DNA from: Podarcis tiliguerta
Taxonomy: Eukaryota
Reading direction: 5' to 3' (one strand)
NCBI GenBank assembly: GCA_965153285.1
Contig: OZ229119.1
Length of the DNA stretch: 64,000 nucleotides
The notes under the pieces are model-generated. The model had not been told where the DNA came from and did not search any database. It saw nothing but the letters and a program-made list of their open reading frames with translations. The position numbers and the translations under genes were made by a program. Positions 3,001-63,339 of the stretch are shown piece by piece (position 1 is the first letter of the stretch; every line of letters starts with the position of its first letter).

Positions 3001-3027
3001 ACACATGTTTCCCATTCCTACCCTATA

Positions 3028-3254
3028 CAGTGGTAGCTTGGTTGTTGAACTTAATCTGTTCTGGGAGTCCGTTTGACTCCTGGAACAGTTTGAAAACCAA
3101 GGCACGGATTCCGATTGGCTGCAGGAGCTTCCTGCACTCAAGTGGAAGCCGCGTCAGATGTTCGGCTTCCAAAAAATGTTTGCAAACTGGAACACTGCGA
3201 TGTTCAGGAGCGGATTTGTTCCGGAGCCAAGCCGTTTGACAACCAGTACCACTG
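3028..3254. mobile_element. Tigger-like MITE
   Basis: ta-cagtggtagcttggttgt ... acaaccagtaccactg-ta. Confidence 0.82.
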
Positions 3255-3849
3255 TACAAGCTTTCTTCTGGAATATTATTATTATTATTATTATTACTAT
3301 TACTCCACCCATCTGACTGGATTGGCCCAGCCACTCCAGATGGCTTCCAACACATCTAAAAACATAATAATGGAAAGAAGTACATTTACTACTACTCCCA
3401 GTCTTTTGAACAAGTATCCATACTGTGATGTCGATTGTGACATTGCATTTCACCAATATAACCCTAAGAAGTTGACAGAATTGCCGTGACTTGTTTGTTC
3501 CAAGCCTGCATCTGATAATACCAGGTGGATTATGAGGACGCCTTGCCTCCAAACACAACGAGGCAATAGCATCACTACATCACAGCCTACGCTCTTTTCA
3601 GCCTCAATTTCAGCTCCGGACCACAATACTTGGAGTAAGCCAAGTACAGAGTTGCTGCGAGCCACTTTCATTGGGCTGCAGAGTGGTGATAAAACCACTG
3701 GACCACATTGCAGGAGTGTTGCAAACCACAAAGGCTGCGTTTCACCAGCTAATTTTGGGAAGCTGACAGCTGTGACTACTAGTCTCAGTCCGCATCTGCT
3801 CTGTGGAGATTCATGATCCAGGGTGGGTTTCTTTCACTCACAAACACAC

Positions 3850-6358: not shown

Positions 6359-6656
6359 ATGGATGCCAGGGACAAGCAGGTTCTACGCTCATTGCGCCTG
6401 GAGCTTTGTGCAGAACTGCTGGTGGAGGGCCTTGTCATTCAATACCTTTACCAAGAAGGCATCCTGACAGAAAGCCACATGCAAGAAATAAGGTCCCAAG
6501 TCACCAACCACAGGAAAACCATGTTGCTCCTTGACATCTTACCTACAAGAGGGCCCAAGGCTTTTGAGACTTTTCTAGATTCCTTACAGGAGTTTCCATG
6601 GGTGAGAGACAAGCTTGAGGCAAAGCGCAATGAAGTTATGCTAGTGGCACTTGATG
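6359..6656 (+). CDS. CRADD: CRADD/RAIDD first coding exon (CARD domain; codons 1-99 + 1 nt)
   Basis: Translation [44 protein letters not shown]...[31 protein letters not shown] closely matches the human RAIDD CARD as recalled. A polypyrimidine tract and cag acceptor end at 6357; the donor is G|GTAAG at 6657. The coding part is 298 nt (phase 1). Confidence 0.98.
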
Positions 6657-8069
6657 GTAAGATTTCAAAACTATTACTATATTGGGTTCATTCTTCCTTT
6701 GATCAAAGAGCTGCAACAGTAGAATTTACAGTTGGAAGGAGTGGACTGCACCTTTAATAGATGTGCGGAAGAGGGACTTTCAGTAAGTGCAGCTTGCCAC
6801 GCAAAGAGCTCTGCCTTCTCTTTCCATTTGGCACTGCAATCCTACATGTCTCTACATTGGAAGTAAGTCCGCTTGAGTTCAACAGGACGTGCTTCCAGAT
6901 AAATGCATGTTGGACTGTAAGCTTAGTCTGTTAGCTGGTTATTTTCTACACTGTTGTTTTGTTGTCATCTTCTAATTTTTAAAATCTTAACTGGACTTTT
7001 TATTGTGTTGCAGTGTGTTTTTGCTTTTCTGACTTGTTTTTTTTTGTGAGCTACAGTTGAAAGACTGGACAAGAAGTCATCTTATAAAAATAAATATTCA
7101 GCCATGTGAGCGCTTCACCCCCTTGGTGAGATCTAGGCTGTTGTCAGTCTAAGTAATTTGTTTGTGATGTGGAGTTAGCTGTTGCAAAATGTGATCCAAA
7201 GTCTAGAGTTCTGAGTAGTCAACTTGCTTCAAAACAGATGTCCAGACTGGTGTGTGTGTGTAAAATCCATTATCTATTTAAAGGGTTCATTTTTACCTTA
7301 TAGGAAATTGTATGTGCTGTACTGATAACTTGAGTGCTCTCTAAGTAACGGCCACCCCAGTTAGGCAACTCAGGGCATAGAGGATAATCTTGCCTTCAGC
7401 CTGGTCTTTGCAATTTTCTTATGTTGCAAGAGTTGTGGGGTGAAGCTTCGAGGAAGTGGCAGCCAAGCAGCTCCAGTAATGCAAATGGGCCTAGAAGCTA
7501 TTGGCATTACAGTGGTAACTTCTGAAGATAGCAAGACAAATGTATGTTTAAAAATATTGAGGTAGGGGAGGATATACTATACCCTTTAGATCAGTATTTC
7601 CCAAAGTGTGGTACACATACCCCTGGGGTTGCACACAAGGATTTCAAAGGGTGTATGGTATCTGCTAGATAAAATAGGATCATAATCATGTACCCCTATT
7701 GAGAGTTTATTCTTACTGGTGTACTCCGACCAACACATTATCTTCGTCTGAGCCCTTCTCAGAAGATAATTTGGTGGTTGGGGTACACTAGTAAGAATAA
7801 ACACTCAAAAAGGGTACATGATTATTGTAAGTTTGGGAAACATTGCTCAGTCTAGACAAATGAGGCTAAAAAGAGATTTAAGGCAGACTTGTGTACATTG
7901 TCATTCTAGATGATGTATTACATTTCTATCACACCTTTCCTTCTAGGAACTCAAAATGGTCCTGCCCCATCCCATTTTATCCTCACAACAACCCCATGAG
8001 ATAGAGACAGGGATTGGCTCCGTGAACGTCATGGCTGAGTGGGGATTTGAACCTTGGTCTTAGTCTAGC

Positions 8070-34219: not shown

Positions 34220-35952
34220 TGCCGCTAGGAACTTCTACCTTATCTCTTTTCTCAGGCTAGAAGGCCTAGTCAACTGAAGCTTCAGTGCTTTAGCTTGTTT
34301 ATTTCGCCGTGGTAGGATGTCTCACCGTTGCCACGAAGTGTGCCCCAGGTTTTGGGTGTCAGTGAGGTTAGAACCCAAAAACCAACCTCTCAGATTTGCA
34401 GCTGTAGCAGGAAGAGACTTCATACAACCATTTCTCATCTATCTGATGGTGATAACCCCTGTATGTAGAACAACCTCTTTCTTGCATCAGCAGAGTGCTT
34501 TAGGATCTTTGCCTCTGACTCGAAGCTGTCATAGCCAAAGCCACCCATCTGAATCCAGAACTCCATGGTCCAAGCCAAGTACTCTTATTTATGCCAGCTG
34601 GGTCTCATGGGAGTTGTAATGTAAAACATCTGGAGGGAAACAGGTTGGGGAAGGCTTTGGTAGAGCACACAGGGGTTTGGGGAGTGACTTCACTGAACAG
34701 CTGTGTGGTAATGCCTGCTTCATACAATGTGATGATTGCAACCAGTACAAGAAGCTGTAGTTTCTGAATTGGACGTAATAACATACCTCTCAGGCCTTCT
34801 ACAGTATTGTGTTCCCTTCCTATATAGATTTTCTTTTGTCTGCCTGACAGCTTCATTATATTTCCAGTCAAGTAAAAATGAAAAGAGCATGGCTATAAAG
34901 TACTTAGCATGGAAAACTAAATTGTTTGGCTTTCTCAGTTATAGTAATGATTGACTACTTAAAGAACACTAGCAAAATGCTAAATTGCTATTCTGGTGGT
35001 ATCTTGAAAGGGAGTAAGGATAAACTGCTTTAAGATAGTTGTGATTATTATTCTTCCATCTCTCTCTCTCTCTCTCCCTCCACACACACACACTTACACT
35101 TCTGCATGTGATAGTGAAATATTGCTTGTGGCAAGGGTCTTATCTGTTATATCCACCACAAAGAGATGTTGAGATTTTTGCATGATGTCATCTAGTTCAA
35201 AAGGAACCAGCCAGCAGTAATGGACCCCTTAATGGGCTATCTACTATTGCAAAAAAGTAGAACACTTATTTTTAACATCCAGTATGTTCCCCTTTCAAGC
35301 AAGAGCTTATTCCTTTGAAATGTGTACATGTTAGACTTTTAAGACAATCTGAATTGGACCAAAAAGATCTACCTAATCCATCATCTTGTTTGCATCTGCA
35401 GCCACGTGCCTCTGAAAAAGCCACAATCCCTCTTGAGCATGAAGGTTCCATTAGAAATTGTATCTCATACCATTAATAGCAAAATGCATGTAGAGTGGTG
35501 CTGATCTTTTTTAAAAGACATGTAGGCTAGAAACCAGCACCCCAACTTGTGGGAACAAATTCTATATTAATTATGCACTACATAGCCAATGGTCAGGGAT
35601 GGTGAGAGATGTCGTCCAAACTGTGGGAGACTGGTCTGCAGCCTTTCTGGAATTCAGTATTCCAAGAAATGAATAAAATAACAAAACAGCAATTGGAAGT
35701 CAAACCAGAGTTAGCTTTATTAAATATATTTCAATGCAACAATCTTGATTTACATAATAAATAATTAAGAATCCATTAATTACAAGCAGCGAGGCGTAGT
35801 ATACACTGGAAAGACCTTTCTGGCACAACGATAGGCAGAACAGTTTAGGAAACAGCTCTCCTTCAGACATTAACAAATAAGCTGCAGTTGATAGGTGGAA
35901 AGATAAAGAAAGATTGCTTTACTCCTGTGTGATTAAATTTTATAACATATGC

Positions 35953-36185
35953 TAGTCATACCTTGGCATTCGAATGGAATCCTTTCGACTTCCAAAATGT
36001 TCAGAAACCAAAGCAGGGCTTCTGATTGGCTGCAGGAAGCTCCTGCAGCCAATCTGAAGCTGCGGAAGCCCCATTGGATGTTCAGGTTCCAAAGAACATT
36101 CACAAACCAGAACATTCCCAGGTTTGCAGTGTTCAGGAGCCAAAACATCCGAGTATTAAGGCGTCCGGGATGCAAGGTACAACTG
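35953..36185. mobile_element. Tigger-like MITE
   Basis: agtcataccttggcatt ... atgcaaggtacaactg-ta; central gattggctgcagg hairpin. Confidence 0.78.
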
Positions 36186-36447
36186 TATTCCAGAAAACGA
36201 AGAAGCTCCACCACCAGTATTTGGCTCAATCTGGTTGATATAAACATAAATTACTATCTTCGCTTTCAACCCTTTTCCCACATTTGTAAATCTACCAACA
36301 CTTTATATTGTTTCACTGGTAATTTAAAGGAAAAAATGACTATTACTCATAATTAATCTAAGCACAACCATAAGGGCTCATGATAAGGTGGTTTAGCTAT
36401 GCGATGTTGAATGTTATATGTTAACTATGTTCTATCCTGTTTCCCCT

Positions 36448-36931
36448 TTGTTGTTGTTGTTGTTGTTTAGTCGTTCAGTCGTGTCCGACTCTTCGTGACC
36501 CCATGGACCAGAGCACGCCAGGCACTTCTGTCTTCCACTGCCACCCGCAGTTTGGTCAGATTCATGTTTGTAGCTTCGAGAACACTGTCTAACCATCTCG
36601 TCCTCTGTCGTCCCCTTCTCCTTGTGCCCTCCATCTTTCCCAACATCAGGGTCTTTTCCAGGGAGTCTTCTCTTCACATGAGGTGGCCAAAGTATTGGAG
36701 TCTCAGCTTCACGATCTGTCCTTCCAGTGAGCACTCAGGGCTGATTTCCTTAAGAATGGATGCATTTGATCTTCTTGCAGTCCATGGGACTCTCAAGAGT
36801 CTCCTCCAGCACCATAATTCAAAAGCGTCAATTCTTCGGCGATCAGCTTTCTTTATGGTCCAGCTCTCACTTCCATACATCACTACTGGGAAAACCATAG
36901 CTTTTACTATACGGACCTTTGTTGGCAAGGT
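36448..36931 (-). mobile_element. Bov-B (RTE LINE) 3' fragment
   Basis: TLPTKVRIVKAMVFPVVMYGSESWTIKKADRRRIDAFELWCWRRLLRVPWTARRSN...; (CAA)n tail. Confidence 0.95.
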
Positions 36932-37980
36932 GTTATTGTTATTATTAAAACCACTCCATGAACCAAGAACTTGTACATGGACCACTAATAATGAATATAT
37001 GTCATAGATATTACTGCAGATTTATTATGCTATTTTTGTGATGTACAAATGGCATGAGAATCAGTATTATTTATATCACTTATTATTCCTATGATCCCTG
37101 TTTATAAAGCCCATTAAAAAGTCTTTTTTAAAAAATAGAAGACTGAATCCCACAGAATGCTATGTTTTTGACAGAAGATCTGTTTTCAAGTTCTTACTGT
37201 TTGTGTTGGATAGTTCTTGTTATCTGAAAAATTGAATACTGTTTTTTTTTTAAATGGTTGTAATAGTAGCTGCCTTTTCCATCTAAAAAGAACTTTGTAA
37301 TATTCTTATACAATCTGTTCTGAACAATCCAAATTATCTGCTAAGCCTTGCATATCTATCTATACTCTTCCTAAAAAAAAGAAAGAAAATGAAAACTTTT
37401 GACAATGACGTAGGAGTTGTATTTTTATTATTACTATTGTGCTGCTTTGATGTGCGGTTGCCGGCATGATCCTGGAGTTCTGAAATATCTTTCAGAATAA
37501 GGCTGTTTCCCTCCTTCCCACATTCATATCCTATCATTATAATTAGTGCCCATTGAATGGTGTTTATCACCCATTTTGATACAATTTCCAAGGCAACAGG
37601 AGCGAAGGACCAGTCCTATAATTGGAAAAGGAAGCCAGTACTAACACTTGCATTCTGAGCTTCGAGAAGGATTACTGCTTCTAGGTTCAGGTGTAGTAGT
37701 AGCAGTGGAACTTCAGTTGGTTCTTAGTTCACCCTCTTTAAACAAACTTGGGTATTCCTCTACTTTGAAACTTTTACCTTTCTATGTCACCACACATGTC
37801 CAGTAGACCTAACCTGCACAATATAGATGGATCAAGCTAACCACATCTCTCAAACGCTACTTCTTGACAGGCTCAATTCAGTAGCAGTTGAAAATGTGAA
37901 ATTGCTATGTGCTTCTTACGGTATTCATCAGCACTGGTACATTTGTATATTTTGGAAACTTTGAGTTGTGGGGACACTTA

Positions 37981-38340
37981 AAAAGGTAAAGGTACCCCTG
38001 CCCGTACGGGCCAGTCTTGACAGACTCTAGGGTTGTGCGCCCATCCCACTCAAGAGGCCGGGGGCCAGCGCTGTCCGGAGACACTTCCGGGTCACGTGGC
38101 CAGCGTGACAAAGCCGCATCTGGCGAGCCAGCGCAGCACACGGAAACGCCGTTTACCTTCCCGCCAGTAAGCGGCCCCTATTTATCTACTTGCACCCGGG
38201 GGTGCTTTCGAACTGTTAGGTTGGCAGGCGCTGGGACCGAGCAACGGGAGCGCACCCTGCCGCGGGGATTCGAACCGCCGACCTTTCGATCGGCAAGCCC
38301 TAGGCGCTGAGGCTTTTACCCACAGCGCCACCCGCGTCCC
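37981..38340 (-). mobile_element. Full-length, young Sauria SINE
   Basis: The minus strand starts GGGACGCGGGTGGCGCTGTGG (A box), contains GGTTCGAATCC (B box) and ends in an (ACCTTT)n tail. Perfect 15-bp TSD ttgtggggacactta (37966-37980 / 38341-38355); CpGs retained. Confidence 0.93.
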
Positions 38341-44797: not shown

Positions 44798-46670
44798 AAT
44801 CAATCAATCAATCAATCTTTATTATGGTCCATAGACCCAACAAATCATTACAAAGCAATGCACAATTCAGACAGCCTACCTCCAGGTTAAACAAGCATTT
44901 TGTTCAGACTTAAATATAGGGATCATTGGTTCTTGCAACCACCGATAAAAACTTTGCCACTGCTAATGTTCTGGCATTCGTCCGGTCTTCCAACAGGAAC
45001 CTGACATAGTGAGCCTCTGATTTTCCCGGGAAAGGTACCAGCAAGGGTAATATCAGTTCAGCCCTGGCTTGCTCATATTTTGCACAGTGCAGCAAAATAT
45101 GCTTTATAGAATCGATGTCTTGAACACACGAGCAGAGTCTGTCCTGGTAGGGAACTCCTCTCAACCTACCATCCACCACTGCAGAAGGAAAGACGTTTAG
45201 TCTGGCTTTGGTGAATAACATTGGATAATTTGGTACTGTCAGGTTTTTAATGTAAGGTGTTAACTTAAAGACATGCCCATATTGTACTCCTACTGCCAGC
45301 AGACTACAGACTGCGTGTGATCGAGATCGCAAGTCACTGTGTGTATTATCCCATAATGTTTGCTTTAGTGTCTTTAGGGCACCTTCATAACCCAGGTAAT
45401 AAAGTTGGGGGGGTGACAGACCAATAGAGGTGGCTTTTCTAGCCATGGTTTTGCTGACAAACTCCTCATTGGTCAGGTGTTGGTACAAACCCTTCCCTAG
45501 ATCAAATATTGAAATCCTGAGCCAATGTTCTAGGGCAGCCCACCATGCTTTAGTTGAAATTGGGCATTCACCAGCTTCTAACAGAAGTATGGAGTTGGGG
45601 ACACAGTTGGGTACCTGCAGCAGAGATTGTAGAAATTTTGCTTGAAAGCCATCTAGCTTAGGCAGGTCCCCATTATGCCAGACATTTGCAGCGTACAGGA
45701 GTTGGGAAACGGATTTTGCATTGAAAACCCTTAAGGCTGCTGGAACATATTTGCCGCCCTTTGTGAAAAAGAATCTGAGTATGGCTAGCTTTGTGATCTC
45801 CGCCTTTTGAAGGGAGGTTTGCCAGTGGTGCTTCCAAGATCCTATATGATGGAATGTGAGTCCTAGATAACTGAAGTATTTAATCTGTTCAAGGTTATGG
45901 CCATCCAGCACCCATTTAGACCAGGAGAAGCTTCTTTCGAATACTAAAATTTTAGATTTTTCATAATTACCGTATTTTACGCTCCATAGGGCGCACCTGA
46001 CCATAGGGAACACCTAGTTTTCAGAGGGGGAAATCAAGGGGGAAAATATGATTCCTCCCCCCCCAGCTCTGGGAGCAGCGGACAGGCTGCAGGCAGCCTA
46101 TGCGCTTCTCCCAGACCTTCTCCCTGCTTTTGCGGGAGGTGGGGGAATTCCCCACCCCCCACCTGCAAAACCAGCAGAAGCCGTGCGCTCTTTAAAAGGG
46201 CTGTGCGGCTTCTCCTGGCTTTTCTGGGAGGCGGGGGAATTCCCTCACCTCTCGCAAAAGCCCGCAGAAGCCGCACGCTCTTTAAAGGGTGTGTGGCTCC
46301 TGTGGGCTTTTCTACGAGGTGGGAGAAGGGACTGATGCGGCTAGTCAGTCCCTTCTCCCTCCTGGGGAAAAGCCCGCAAGAGCGCACGGAGCTTTTCTTG
46401 GGGGCTTTTCCCGCCTGCCTCCCCCCTGCATTCGCTCCATAGGACGCACACACATTTCCCCTTGCATTTTAGGAGGGAAAAAGTGTGTCCTATAGAGCGA
46501 AAAATACGGTAATGGATAAACCATTTCCAAAACAGTAATCAGAAAACTTCCTCGGCAGATATTTCAAACCCGGTCTGGAACATGAGATTATGGCCACGTC
46601 ATCCGCATATAACAACAAGTGGGTCCTTCTCTTTCCTATTTTTGGAAGGTGTCCATCTGGGTCCATTAAG
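44798..46670 (-). mobile_element. 5'-truncated non-LTR retrotransposon (RT C-terminal half + CCHC region; RTE-X/Daphne-like), split by a MITE
   Basis: LLLYADDVAI...GLSI|NYEKSKILVF...LEQIKYFSYLGLTF...DRLCSC...HILLHCAKY; AATAAA followed by a (GATT)n tail on the minus strand. Clade assignment is tentative. Confidence 0.85.
45970..46509. mobile_element. Tc1/mariner-pogo-type MITE (CCGTATTTT TIR, TA TSD)
   Basis: ta-ccgtattttacgctccatagg ... cctatagagcgaaaaatacgg-ta; GC-rich interior with internal repeats. Confidence 0.9.
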
Positions 46671-48375: not shown

Positions 48376-48826
48376 GTGGTGGTGGTGGTGTTGTTTAGTC
48401 ATTTAGTCGTGTCCGACTCTTCGTGACCCCATGGACCAGAGCATGCCAGGCACTTCTGTCTTCCAGTGCCTCCTGGAGTTTCATCAAACTCATGTTGGTA
48501 GCTTCGAGAACACTGTCCAACCATCTCGTCCTCTGTCGTCCCCTTCTCCTTGTGCCCTCAATCTTTCCCAACATCGGAGTCTTTTCCAGGGAGTCTTCTC
48601 TTCTCACGAGGTGGCCACAGTATTGGAGCCTCAGCTTCACGATCTGTCCTTCCAGTGAGCACTCAGGGCTGATTTCCTTCAGAATGGATAGGTTTGATCT
48701 TCTTGCAGTCCATGGGACTCTCAAGAGTCTCCTCCAGCACCCTAATTCAAAAGCATCAATTCTTCGGCGATCAGCCTTCTTTATGGTCCAGCTCTCACTT
48801 CCATACATCACTACTGGGAAAACCAT
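48376..48826 (-). mobile_element. Bov-B (RTE LINE) 3' fragment
   Basis: Uninterrupted 143-aa Bov-B C-terminus (48395-48826); TSD ccattgcaa (48367-48375 / 48823-48831). Confidence 0.95.
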
Positions 48827-50931: not shown

Positions 50932-51193
50932 NNNNNNNNNNNNNNNNNNNNNNNNNNNNNNNNNNNNNNNNNNNNNNNNNNNNNNNNNNNNNNNNNNNNN
51001 NNNNNNNNNNNNNNNNNNNNNNNNNNNNNNNNNNNNNNNNNNNNNNNNNNNNNNNNNNNNNNNNNNNNNNNNNNNNNNNNNNNNNNNNNNNNNNNNNNNN
51101 NNNNNNNNNNNNNNNNNNNNNNNNNNNNNNNNNNNNNNNNNNNNNNNNNNNNNNNNNNNNNNNNNNNNNNNNNNNNNNNNNNNNNNNNNNNNN
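50932..51193. other. Assembly gap (262 N)
   Basis: Run of N. Confidence 1.
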
Positions 51194-57720: not shown

Positions 57721-58509
57721 TGGTGCAATAAATACCAAGTTGCCTTTGAAAAGGGTTCAGAAACTGTAACTTGCTGTGGAATGTTCTCCTTGGGGAGGTA
57801 CTTATCCAGGTTTTAGATCCTCCTCCCTGATGTTCTGCCTCCTGAAATCACAGATTGCCCTGGGCCAATCCAACCTGATTTGCAGCAATCCATGGTTGTG
57901 TATACCCTTCTCACCCAAGGCCCTCCAAATATATCCCATTTTGCTCAGGACTTGGTCAAATCCAGTGCACAGCCTTAGTTCGTATAGCAAAGGCCACTTA
58001 TCTTGCTCGTTTTTTTCTTTCTTTCTTTCTTTCCCTGTCTGTTTCTCCTAAAACAATATCTATGCCAATTACTATAAAGATATAATTTGGCACAATTAGC
58101 TACTGGCTGAAACAGGAGTCTCGTAATTCTGAGAGGCTTCCCAAATTGTGTTATTTGGAGCAAGTTCAAGCAATTTGCTGCTCTTTGGGATGAAAAGCTT
58201 TTTCATCCACTCGACATGGATGCTCTCCAAGAGGGCTCCATTCCAGTTAAATGCAAAAGATGCAAAAATCTTCATTTACACAGATCAGTAGGATCTTTAG
58301 TAGGGATAAGGTATCCAGATGCACTGCATGGCTTGGATTTGGTAAAACCTCACATAGATTTGAAAACATTTCACTGATGAGGGGGTATAGCTCAGCAGCA
58401 GAACACATGCTATGCAGAAGGTCCCAAATTCAATCTCTTTCAGGTTCAGGTAGAGCTGGGAAAGATCCCCATCAGGAAACCCTGAAGAGCTGTTGCCAGT
58501 CATTATAGA

Positions 58510-59368
58510 CTGGGGTCAGCAAACTTTTTCATCAGGGGGCTGGTCCACTGTCCCTCAGACACTGTGGGGGGGCCGGACGATATTTTGAAAAATATAAATA
58601 CCCTGCAGGCCTGTCCCGCAGCTGCCTCCGGACCTGGAGGAGGAACGCACTCTGCACGTGCCCAGGAGCGCATCTCGGCACCGCCCACTCACTAGGATTG
58701 TTGACGAGCAGCAGCTGCTCCATCGGCCCATTCCCGCAGAGGCCAGGTTGGCAGGCAGGCCGCGTACATGGAGCACTGGGCAGTCAGCCACAGCTCGCCC
58801 TCCAGCTGCTCCAGCATGGCCACAGAATGCACCACCAGCAGCAGCACGAGGCCAGGCGCCAGGCATGGGACCAGCAGGTGCGCCAAGCTCTGGCTGAAGT
58901 CCTGAGACGTGCCCATCATGATGTCCATGGTGCAGCCCAGACTGGCCTCTCCATCCATGGCTGCACTGGGTTTACCTCAGCTGTGGGCGGCAAGGCTTCG
59001 GATTGGCTGCAGGAACTTCCTGCAGCCAATCCAAAGCCACACCAGTGTTGCCGCCTGCCCAGATCTGCCTGTGGCTTCGGATTGGCTACAGGAGCTTCTT
59101 GCAGCCAATCCGAAGCTGCGCCAGCATTGCCGTCCCCCCAGAGGTGTCCGCGCTTCAGACTGGCTGCTGGAGCTTCCTGCAGCCAATCTGAAGCTGCACC
59201 AGCGTTGCTGCCCGCCCAGAGCCGTGCCAGCTTCATGGAAGTCAGTCCCTGCACAGCGAGGCGTCTGCAGTGCGCAGGGACTGGCCAAGCAGGCGGCAGG
59301 GTCCGCAGGCTGGATTTACGAGCCGGGGGGAATGCATCTGGCCCCAGGCCTTAGTTTGCCAACCCTTG
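58510..59368. mobile_element. Non-autonomous hAT-like element (Pack-type, SPR cargo)
   Basis: Imperfect TIRs ctggggtcagcaaact ... agtttgccaacccttg. Degenerate 8-bp flanks ttatagac / ttgtagag resemble the NNNTAGAN Charlie-type target (boundary uncertain by 1 nt). The element interrupts a SINE whose two halves rejoin across it. Confidence 0.8.
58693..58958 (-). pseudogene. SPR: Degenerate copy of sepiapterin reductase exon 1 carried inside a DNA transposon
   Basis: Joining three frames gives MDGEASLGCTMDIMMGTSQDFSQSLAHLLVPCLAPGLVLLLVVHSVAMLEQLEGEL / ADCPVLHVRGLPANLASAG / GPMEQLLLVNN. Recalled human SPR reads [54 protein letters not shown]...GLRVVRVPADLGAEAG...GLQRLLLINNAG. GCAGCCATGG start context; GTGAGT donor right after the NN codons. 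Two frameshifts and an internal deletion. Confidence 0.88.
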
Positions 59369-59439
59369 TTGTAGAGAATACTGAGCTAGATGAGCAAAAA
59401 AGACAGGTTCCTCTGTTCCCATGAGCCCATTGGTTAATC

Positions 59440-59810
59440 ATGCAGGTGGCATTGTGGTCTAAAGCACTGAGCTTCTTGGGGTTGCCAATCGGAAGGTCAG
59501 CAGTTCAAATCCCCACAAAGGGTGAGCTCCTGTTGCTCTGTCCCAGCTCCTGCCAACCTAGCAGTTTGAAAGCATGCCAGTGCAAGTAGATAAATAGGCA
59601 GGAAGGTAAACGGTGTTTCCGTGCACTCTGGTTTCCGTCACGGTGTTCCGTTGTGCCAGAAGCAGTTTAGTCATGCTAACCACATGACCTGGAAAGCTGT
59701 CTGTGGACAAACGTCGGCTCCCTCGGCCTGAAAGTGAGATGAGCACCACAACCCCACAGTCTCCTTTGACTGGACTTAACCATCCAGGGGTCCTTTACCT
59801 TTACCTTTTT
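59440..59810 (+). mobile_element. Sauria SINE, older CpG-decayed copy
   Basis: Colinear with the 62993 copy; tail tcctttacctttaccttttt. Confidence 0.85.
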
Positions 59811-62992: not shown

Positions 62993-63339
62993 GGGGATGC
63001 GGGTGGCGCTGTGGGTTAAACCACAGAGCCTAGGGCTTGCCGATCAGAAGGTTGTCGGTTCGAATCCCCGCGACGGGGTGGCCTCCCATTGCTCGGTCCC
63101 TGCTCCTGCCAACCTAGCAGTTTGAAAGCATGTCAAAGTGCAAGTAGATAAATAGGTACCACTCTGGCGGGAAGGTAAATGGTGTTTCCGTGCACTGCTC
63201 TGGTTTGCCAGAATCAGCTTAGTCTTGCTGGCCACATGACCCAGAAGCTATACGCCAGCTCCCTCGGCCAATAAAGCGAGATGAGCGCTGCAACCCCAGA
63301 GTCGGTCACGACTGGACCTAATGGTCAGGGCTCCCTTTA
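62993..63339 (+). mobile_element. Sauria SINE
   Basis: ggggatgcgggtggcgctgtgg...ggttcgaatcccc...ccctttac; near-perfect TSD catgcccaaat / catggccaaat. Confidence 0.9.

Follow-up and report, generated by a model that had tools for sequence, protein, structure and literature searches.

How the 5' end of the sepiapterin reductase gene (SPR) comes to lie at a place where no other SPR exon occurs within 64 kb is the question raised by this locus. The stretch of DNA that was analysed, called the window below, comprises 64,000 nucleotides of contig OZ229119.1 of Podarcis tiliguerta. The segment in question occupies positions 58510-59368 and carries the remains of SPR exon 1 on its minus strand, between short inverted ends. 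From the sequence comparisons described below, we consider it probable that this segment is the old and no longer active remnant of a non-autonomous TIR transposon, belonging in all likelihood to the hAT superfamily, the inside of which was replaced by 5' DNA of the lacertid SPR gene and which was then amplified.

In the following sections, we describe the SPR-derived cargo, the element that surrounds it and its insertion site, and then turn to the copies found in other genomes and to what they imply about the origin of the family.

The SPR-derived cargo

Read along the minus strand, the cargo consists of the following parts:

58959 to 58994, minus strand: 36-nt leader 5' of the ATG, possibly SPR 5' UTR, including the Kozak-like GCAGCCATGG
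58693 to 58958, minus strand: decayed SPR exon 1 coding sequence, identified by phmmer against PDB, by tblastn with the true Podarcis SPR, and in the tree
58600 to 58692, minus strand: candidate donor GTGAGT (58692-58687) and intron-1-like DNA, directly after the exon

The Kozak-like GCAGCCATGG is located at 58967-58958 on the minus strand. From there, the SPR reading runs through three frame pieces on the same strand: 58958-58791 (MDGEA...LEQLEGEL), 58782-58738 (CPVLHVRGLPANLAS) and 58732-58694 (GPMEQLLLVNN). The frame changes near 58783-58790 and again near 58733-58741, and the second of these places also has a deletion of about 15 codons. A preliminary description of the segment had proposed just such an SPR N-terminus with two frameshifts, ending in LLLVNN and followed by a donor and GC-rich intron-like DNA, and all of these features are present.

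The identity of the cargo was examined with several types of search. When the 88-aa ORF was compared with all PDB chains by phmmer, all eight of the matches obtained were sepiapterin reductase, the best being the mouse enzyme (1sep, E 1.6e-5), whereas a Pfam search with the three ORF pieces gave no meaningful match. Aligned with residues 1-61 of the true Podarcis muralis SPR (P0069), the window copy is 57% identical and has the lacertid-specific MDGEA start. As judged by these comparisons, the SPR homology of 58958-58693 is beyond chance. The assignment to SPR exon 1 made in the preliminary description thus agrees with the PDB matches and the P. muralis alignment, and also with the tree presented below.

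The alignment of P0069 to the window is limited to about its first 107 residues, and tblastn with this protein found no match to residues 120-268 (exons 2 and 3) anywhere in the 64 kb. The NNA(G) point is also where retained-intron transcripts of squamate SPR (P0160 and P0081) and a large number of gene models break. No poly(A) and no separate TSD were found around the SPR cargo in the window copy. Since the donor directly follows the end of exon 1, and since exon 2 and a poly(A) are lacking, the cargo was copied from DNA and not from mRNA. Capture at the DNA level rather than retroposition, as had been argued earlier, is further favoured by six copies elsewhere that have the same post-donor sequence (see below). 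A processed SPR pseudogene or a chance ORF would account for the coding similarity and for nothing more, and we regard the probability of either as close to nil: the retrocopy is ruled out by the end of exon 1 with its GT donor and by the lack of exons 2 and 3 and of poly(A), and the chance ORF by the unanimous PDB matches.

The intron-like piece at 58600-58692 has 70% G+C and a CpG obs/exp of 0.64, and its flanks have 44-50% G+C; in the SPR exon piece, CpG obs/exp is 0.37. Where arginines of true SPR are aligned with the window copy, eight out of nine are now C, Q or H. These are the residues that CGN codons yield when their CpG undergoes a transition, which indicates CpG decay of the window copy.

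Ends of the element

The element is a dead cut-and-paste transposon of 859 bases (58510-59368). Note that its right end and the exact borders of the cargo were read from the window copy alone, while the other copies were read as protein read-throughs. Outside the cargo, it consists of the following parts, listed together with the candidate TSD:

58503 to 58510: left copy of the candidate 8-bp TSD, TTATAGAC, 6/8 against 59369-59376
58510 to 58525, plus strand: left TIR, CTGGGGTCAGCAAACT, 12/16 against the reverse complement of 59353-59368
58526 to 58599: left subterminal region, 50% G+C, the inner part of which (58559-58599) is common to P0006 as read-through translation
58995 to 59235 (241 bp): three tandem units of 78-79 bp each, 76-80% alike, between the leader and the right end
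59236 to 59352: right subterminal region, which has 65% G+C and contains a 13-nt hairpin (59243-59283)
59353 to 59368, minus strand: right TIR, reverse-complemented CAAGGGTTGGCAAACT, 12/16 against the left TIR
59369 to 59376: right copy of the candidate 8-bp TSD, TTGTAGAG, 6/8 against 58503-58510

A match of 12/16 between the two TIRs has a p of about 8e-5 for a random pair of sites in the window. TIRs of hAT elements are about 10-25 nt long and start with C/T-A-R-N-G. The right arm starts with CAAGG; the left arm starts with CTGGG and is off the hAT motif at the second base. The central mismatches, CA in one arm and TG in the other, are the two decay products of one CpG, so that the original end was probably CAGGGGTCGGCAAACT. 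We take such an end to be typical of hAT-Charlie MITEs, and mammalian hAT-Charlie MITEs with CAGGGGTCGGCAAAC-type ends presumably resemble the undecayed TIR reconstructed here together with the T-run that follows it. As for the target site, the agreement of 6/8 between TTATAGAC and TTGTAGAG has a chance of about 0.004 in one register, the left octamer overlapping the first TIR base by 1 nt, and comes from the one copy examined.

The element is most likely a hAT, with the decayed 16-nt TIR and the 6/8 candidate TSD as the sole basis for the choice of superfamily. The ends could instead resemble those of hAT elements by coincidence, the true vehicle being a member of another TIR superfamily or something different, such as a Helitron. 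The modest TIR match (only 12/16) and the one-base register problem of the 6/8 TSD would fit this alternative, as would the negative results that neither a transposase within the element nor an autonomous partner was seen and that no second element with these ends occurred in the 64-kb window. However, the ends lie exactly at the break in a SINE (see below) and at a jump in base composition, with G+C going up between 58500 and 58600, from about 46% to 67%, and dropping again after 59370; moreover, the central TIR mismatches are accounted for by the decay of a single CpG, and the left subterminal sequence is common to P0006. We therefore hold a vehicle other than hAT to be quite improbable.

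Tandem repeats upstream of the ATG

Each of the 78-79 bp units contains a palindrome of 43 nt, in which two inverted CCAAT boxes are included. The palindrome is also found at 36013-36066, with 87-92% identity over about 45-50 nt, and there is a weaker match at 3102-3157. In the same parts of the window, 3020-3270 and 35950-36190 are TA-flanked MITEs with CAGTGGTA-type inverted ends, in which the CCAAT palindrome is central. The 241 bp of tandem units are thus akin to another mobile element and resemble a MITE palindrome, not a gene. Because the palindrome is thus a module of unrelated MITEs, the 78-79 bp repeats need not be the SPR promoter; on this sequence evidence, that reading of the repeats is weakened, not rejected. 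Palindromes of this type could stall replication and so favour template switching.

Insertion site and surroundings

The element interrupts a SINE, whose two parts are as follows:

58370 to 58509, plus strand: 5' part of a tRNA-derived SINE, with a tRNA-like head, split by the element
59377 to 59440, plus strand: continuation of the SINE 3' of the element

When the flanks were joined and compared by BLAST, the SINE match extended through TTATAGAC/TTGTAGAG. No second copy of the interrupted SINE was found in the window, and a full-text literature search with the SINE motif found no paper.

Far upstream, the window contains a plus-strand ORF at 6359-6757 that we take, by eye, to be the CARD domain of CRADD. 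With the CARD exon of CRADD on the plus strand at this position, the element lies downstream of it, either in an intron or beyond the gene, and is antisense to CRADD. Nothing suggests any function of the window copy.

The surrounding DNA is rich in other repeats. A second SINE family adjoins the element at 59440-59700 and has two more copies in the window, at 62997-63241 and 38139-38335 (73-76% identity). ORFs resembling the C-terminal part of a LINE reverse transcriptase are present on the minus strand at 36674-36985, 48395-48826 and 44910-46013; by their look, they comprise two near-identical Bov-B-like pieces and one ORF of 367 aa. Positions 50932-51193 are 262 N, which represent an assembly gap or masked sequence.

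A probable multicopy family in lacertids

To collect further copies, we searched all 1.8 billion representatives by HMMER with the 88-aa ORF as query and then used a profile of the lacertid proteins. The scan with the ORF found six short proteins, which came from Podarcis lilfordi, P. muralis and Phrynocephalus forsythii. HMMER and the profile together identified at least 13 annotated proteins that are cargo fragments in the lacertids P. lilfordi, P. muralis and Zootoca, whereas a metagenome scan with the fragment profile gave no match. The lacertid copies are as follows:

Podarcis lilfordi, on at least seven chromosome-scale contigs: P0001, P0005, P0156, P0157, P0158, P0161, P0163, P0166 and P0167
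Podarcis muralis: P0002 and P0006
Zootoca: P0051 and P0162

The likeness between these copies and the window extends beyond the exon. The read-through that follows the donor, ...ERAAPR.APEHVQSAFLLQV..., is common to the window and to P0006, P0156, P0157, P0158, P0166 and P0002. For P0006, the match to window positions 58741-58559 comprises 44/61 residues (72%, E 7e-28); it crosses the donor and the intron-like DNA and then continues through about 40 bp of the A+T-richer left subterminal region. P0006 thus has the same junction between cargo and transposon, which argues that cargo and element moved together.

The sharing of this junction bears directly on how the cargo was acquired. In a survey of 100 animal genomes, gap filling is the process mostly credited for single-copy Pack-TIRs (PMC8277862), and a resident hAT at the present locus could in the same way have been repaired locally with SPR DNA, or an older element could have received a secondary insertion of SPR. 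Against this, the cargo is found on many chromosomes and in three species, P0006 contains the junction, and the cargo has no TSD or poly(A) of its own. The presence of the same junction at one or more other loci rules out local, single-copy repair, and we consider local filling and secondary insertion, taken together, to be very unlikely. The case that the preliminary description had named as decisive against its own view, namely a fragment present only once and having a TSD or poly(A) of its own, does not agree with the data; the amplified family that it proposed is supported by the fragments on at least seven P. lilfordi contigs, in P. muralis and in Zootoca, and by the junction of P0006. 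The evidence at hand supports the reading of the annotated copies as carriers of the same cargo as the window, in a loaded hAT of the Pack-TIR type.

Pairwise identity amounts to 55-76% among the lacertid copies and to 65-77% between a copy and the true gene, that is, their relationships are star-like. We read this pattern as the trace of a burst of copying, after which the copies decayed independently.

These observations suggest the following course of events. About 390 bp of the genomic SPR 5' end, consisting of a short leader, the whole coding exon 1, the donor and about 90 bp of intron 1, would have been taken into a hAT element in a single event, by template switching or through repair of a gap where the element was broken. 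The loaded element would then have been spread in a burst by a hAT transposase acting in trans, as suggested by the roughly equal distances among the copies and between each copy and the true gene. The window copy would have been inserted in the SINE downstream of the CARD exon of CRADD; after insertion, it was presumably methylated, lost most of its CpGs and acquired two frameshifts and a deletion, and it would have no coding function now.

Origin of the cargo and other squamate lineages

To determine from which gene the copies are derived, we constructed a maximum-likelihood tree of the exon 1 region from 18 true SPRs and 24 fragments, in which the window copy was entered with X at the breaks. 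Eleven lacertid fragments, including the window copy, form one group (100/96), and this group is sister to the true Podarcis SPR (100/99). The true gene is located on chromosome 9 in P. muralis (PMC6431182).

The tree also contains fragments from two other squamate lineages. In Rhineura floridana, a single CpG-decayed copy of SPR exon 1 was found (P0159, n=1); it groups with the Rhineura SPR (98/97), with which it shares the start MEAEPGGGGLG, and it is located on a different chromosome-scale contig from the true SPR gene of this species. In Phrynocephalus forsythii, there are at least 12 dispersed, CpG-decayed copies (P0003, P0004, P0007 and P0009-P0017) on at least eight contigs. The 12 Phrynocephalus fragments in the tree group with the Phrynocephalus SPR (100/99), and Pogona falls outside. 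In all three sets, that is, in lacertids, Rhineura and Phrynocephalus, the fragments read through into the intron after NNA(G) with G-E, i.e. GTGAG. In lacertids, about 90 bp of the intron were copied; in P0004, P0011 and P0014 of Phrynocephalus, the read-through extends beyond the donor for at least about 85 codons, which corresponds to about 260 bp or more.

Since each set groups with the SPR of its own species, the sets have separate origins in lacertids, Rhineura and Phrynocephalus. On the evidence of the tree and the read-throughs, SPR exon 1 is dispersed at the DNA level as the outcome of at least three separate events in squamates, of which the Rhineura and Phrynocephalus sets are newly described here.

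A problem arises when the number of captures within lacertids is to be read from the tree. The stem below the lacertid copies has a length of 0.17, part of which may reflect CpG decay that occurred in parallel at identical sites, so that a single lacertid capture is likely, not proven. For the same reason, we set aside the shared stem as a proof of single capture, because parallel CpG decay can mimic it.

The repeated involvement of SPR brings in another explanation, in which transposon ends, or a palindrome prone to breakage, flank the SPR 5' end at its native locus, and copies leave this locus again and again by macrotransposition or end bypass. The occurrence of copies of exon 1 and the start of the intron in three squamate lineages, each with its own (Rhineura 98/97, Phrynocephalus 100/99, lacertids 100/99), is what such a locus would produce; the Phrynocephalus copies radiate from the true gene without a shared stem, and in P. 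muralis indels of 1.4 kb and 2 kb are located just upstream of SPR (PMC6431182). However, the copied unit is not the same, with about 90 bp of intron in lacertids versus about 260 bp or more in Phrynocephalus, and the lacertid copies are separated from the true gene by their shared stem of 0.17. As an explanation of the present element we regard repeated launching from the native locus as unlikely, and we prefer the uptake of SPR DNA into a hAT element followed by amplification.

Several of the copies are annotated as 'sepiapterin reductase-like' or as chimeric proteins. In P0051, P0162, P0001, P0003, P0009, P0012, P0016 and P0017, the SPR fragment passes into unrelated sequence exactly at the captured donor; P0162, from Zootoca, runs on into an RPL27-like part. 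In P0161, from P. lilfordi, foreign exons are present upstream of the SPR fragment. Judging from the predicted proteins, the cargo may serve as a portable first exon in such chimeric gene models, or the models may be annotation artefacts.

Comparison with known Pack elements

Gene-fragment capture by DNA transposons is a main route of exon shuffling in plants. The Pack-MULEs of rice and the Pack-TYPE elements of plants are similar to the lizard family in that they carry intron-containing genomic fragments, prefer G+C-rich 5' ends, are amplified, and often give rise to chimeric gene models. In contrast to the lizard family, Pack-MULEs belong to the Mutator superfamily, have a TSD of 9-10 bp and long TIRs, and are found in plants.

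In animals, Tan et al. (2021) identified 370 Pack-TIRs in 100 genomes, 208 of which are hAT (PMC8277862). Multicopy Pack-TIRs account for only 4/370, three being in frog and one in alligator (PMC8277862), and the text of that paper makes no mention of lizards (PMC8277862). The closest counterpart, Pack-hAT-N8_XT of Xenopus tropicalis, carries the 5' UTR of CAPSL (PMC8277862) and is likewise a non-autonomous hAT loaded with a short and G+C-rich fragment from the 5' end of a host gene. Both this element and the lizard family are found on several chromosomes, far from the parent gene. However, Pack-hAT-N8_XT has three copies, whereas the lizard family has at least eight loci annotated as genes in P. 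lilfordi alone; in addition, the lizard cargo, unlike that of Pack-hAT-N8_XT, comprises one coding exon in full, together with the splice donor. In the literature that we searched, neither lizard Pack elements nor SPR fragments have been reported, and the earlier suggestion that an SPR-carrying hAT family of lizards may be undescribed holds for the literature searched.

Significance

Animal Pack-TIRs are thought to be almost always single-copy. With at least eight loci per genome and a presence in several lacertid genera, the lizard family would rank with the largest known from any vertebrate.

The identity of the captured gene is also of practical importance. The orange morph of the common wall lizard is underlain by cis-regulatory variation just upstream of SPR (PMC6431182), and dispersed look-alikes of the SPR 5' end can mislead both read mapping and gene annotation.

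Finally, the separate SPR exon 1 families of Rhineura and Phrynocephalus raise the question of why SPR has been struck repeatedly. One possibility, which we put forward tentatively and consider less than probable, is that mobile copies have arisen from the SPR 5' end again and again in squamates owing to some property of the native locus, for example a transposon end residing there or a palindrome close to the promoter that is prone to breakage. The copied cassette, with the first exon, the donor and possibly some of the promoter, might then seed chimeric first exons elsewhere in the genome.
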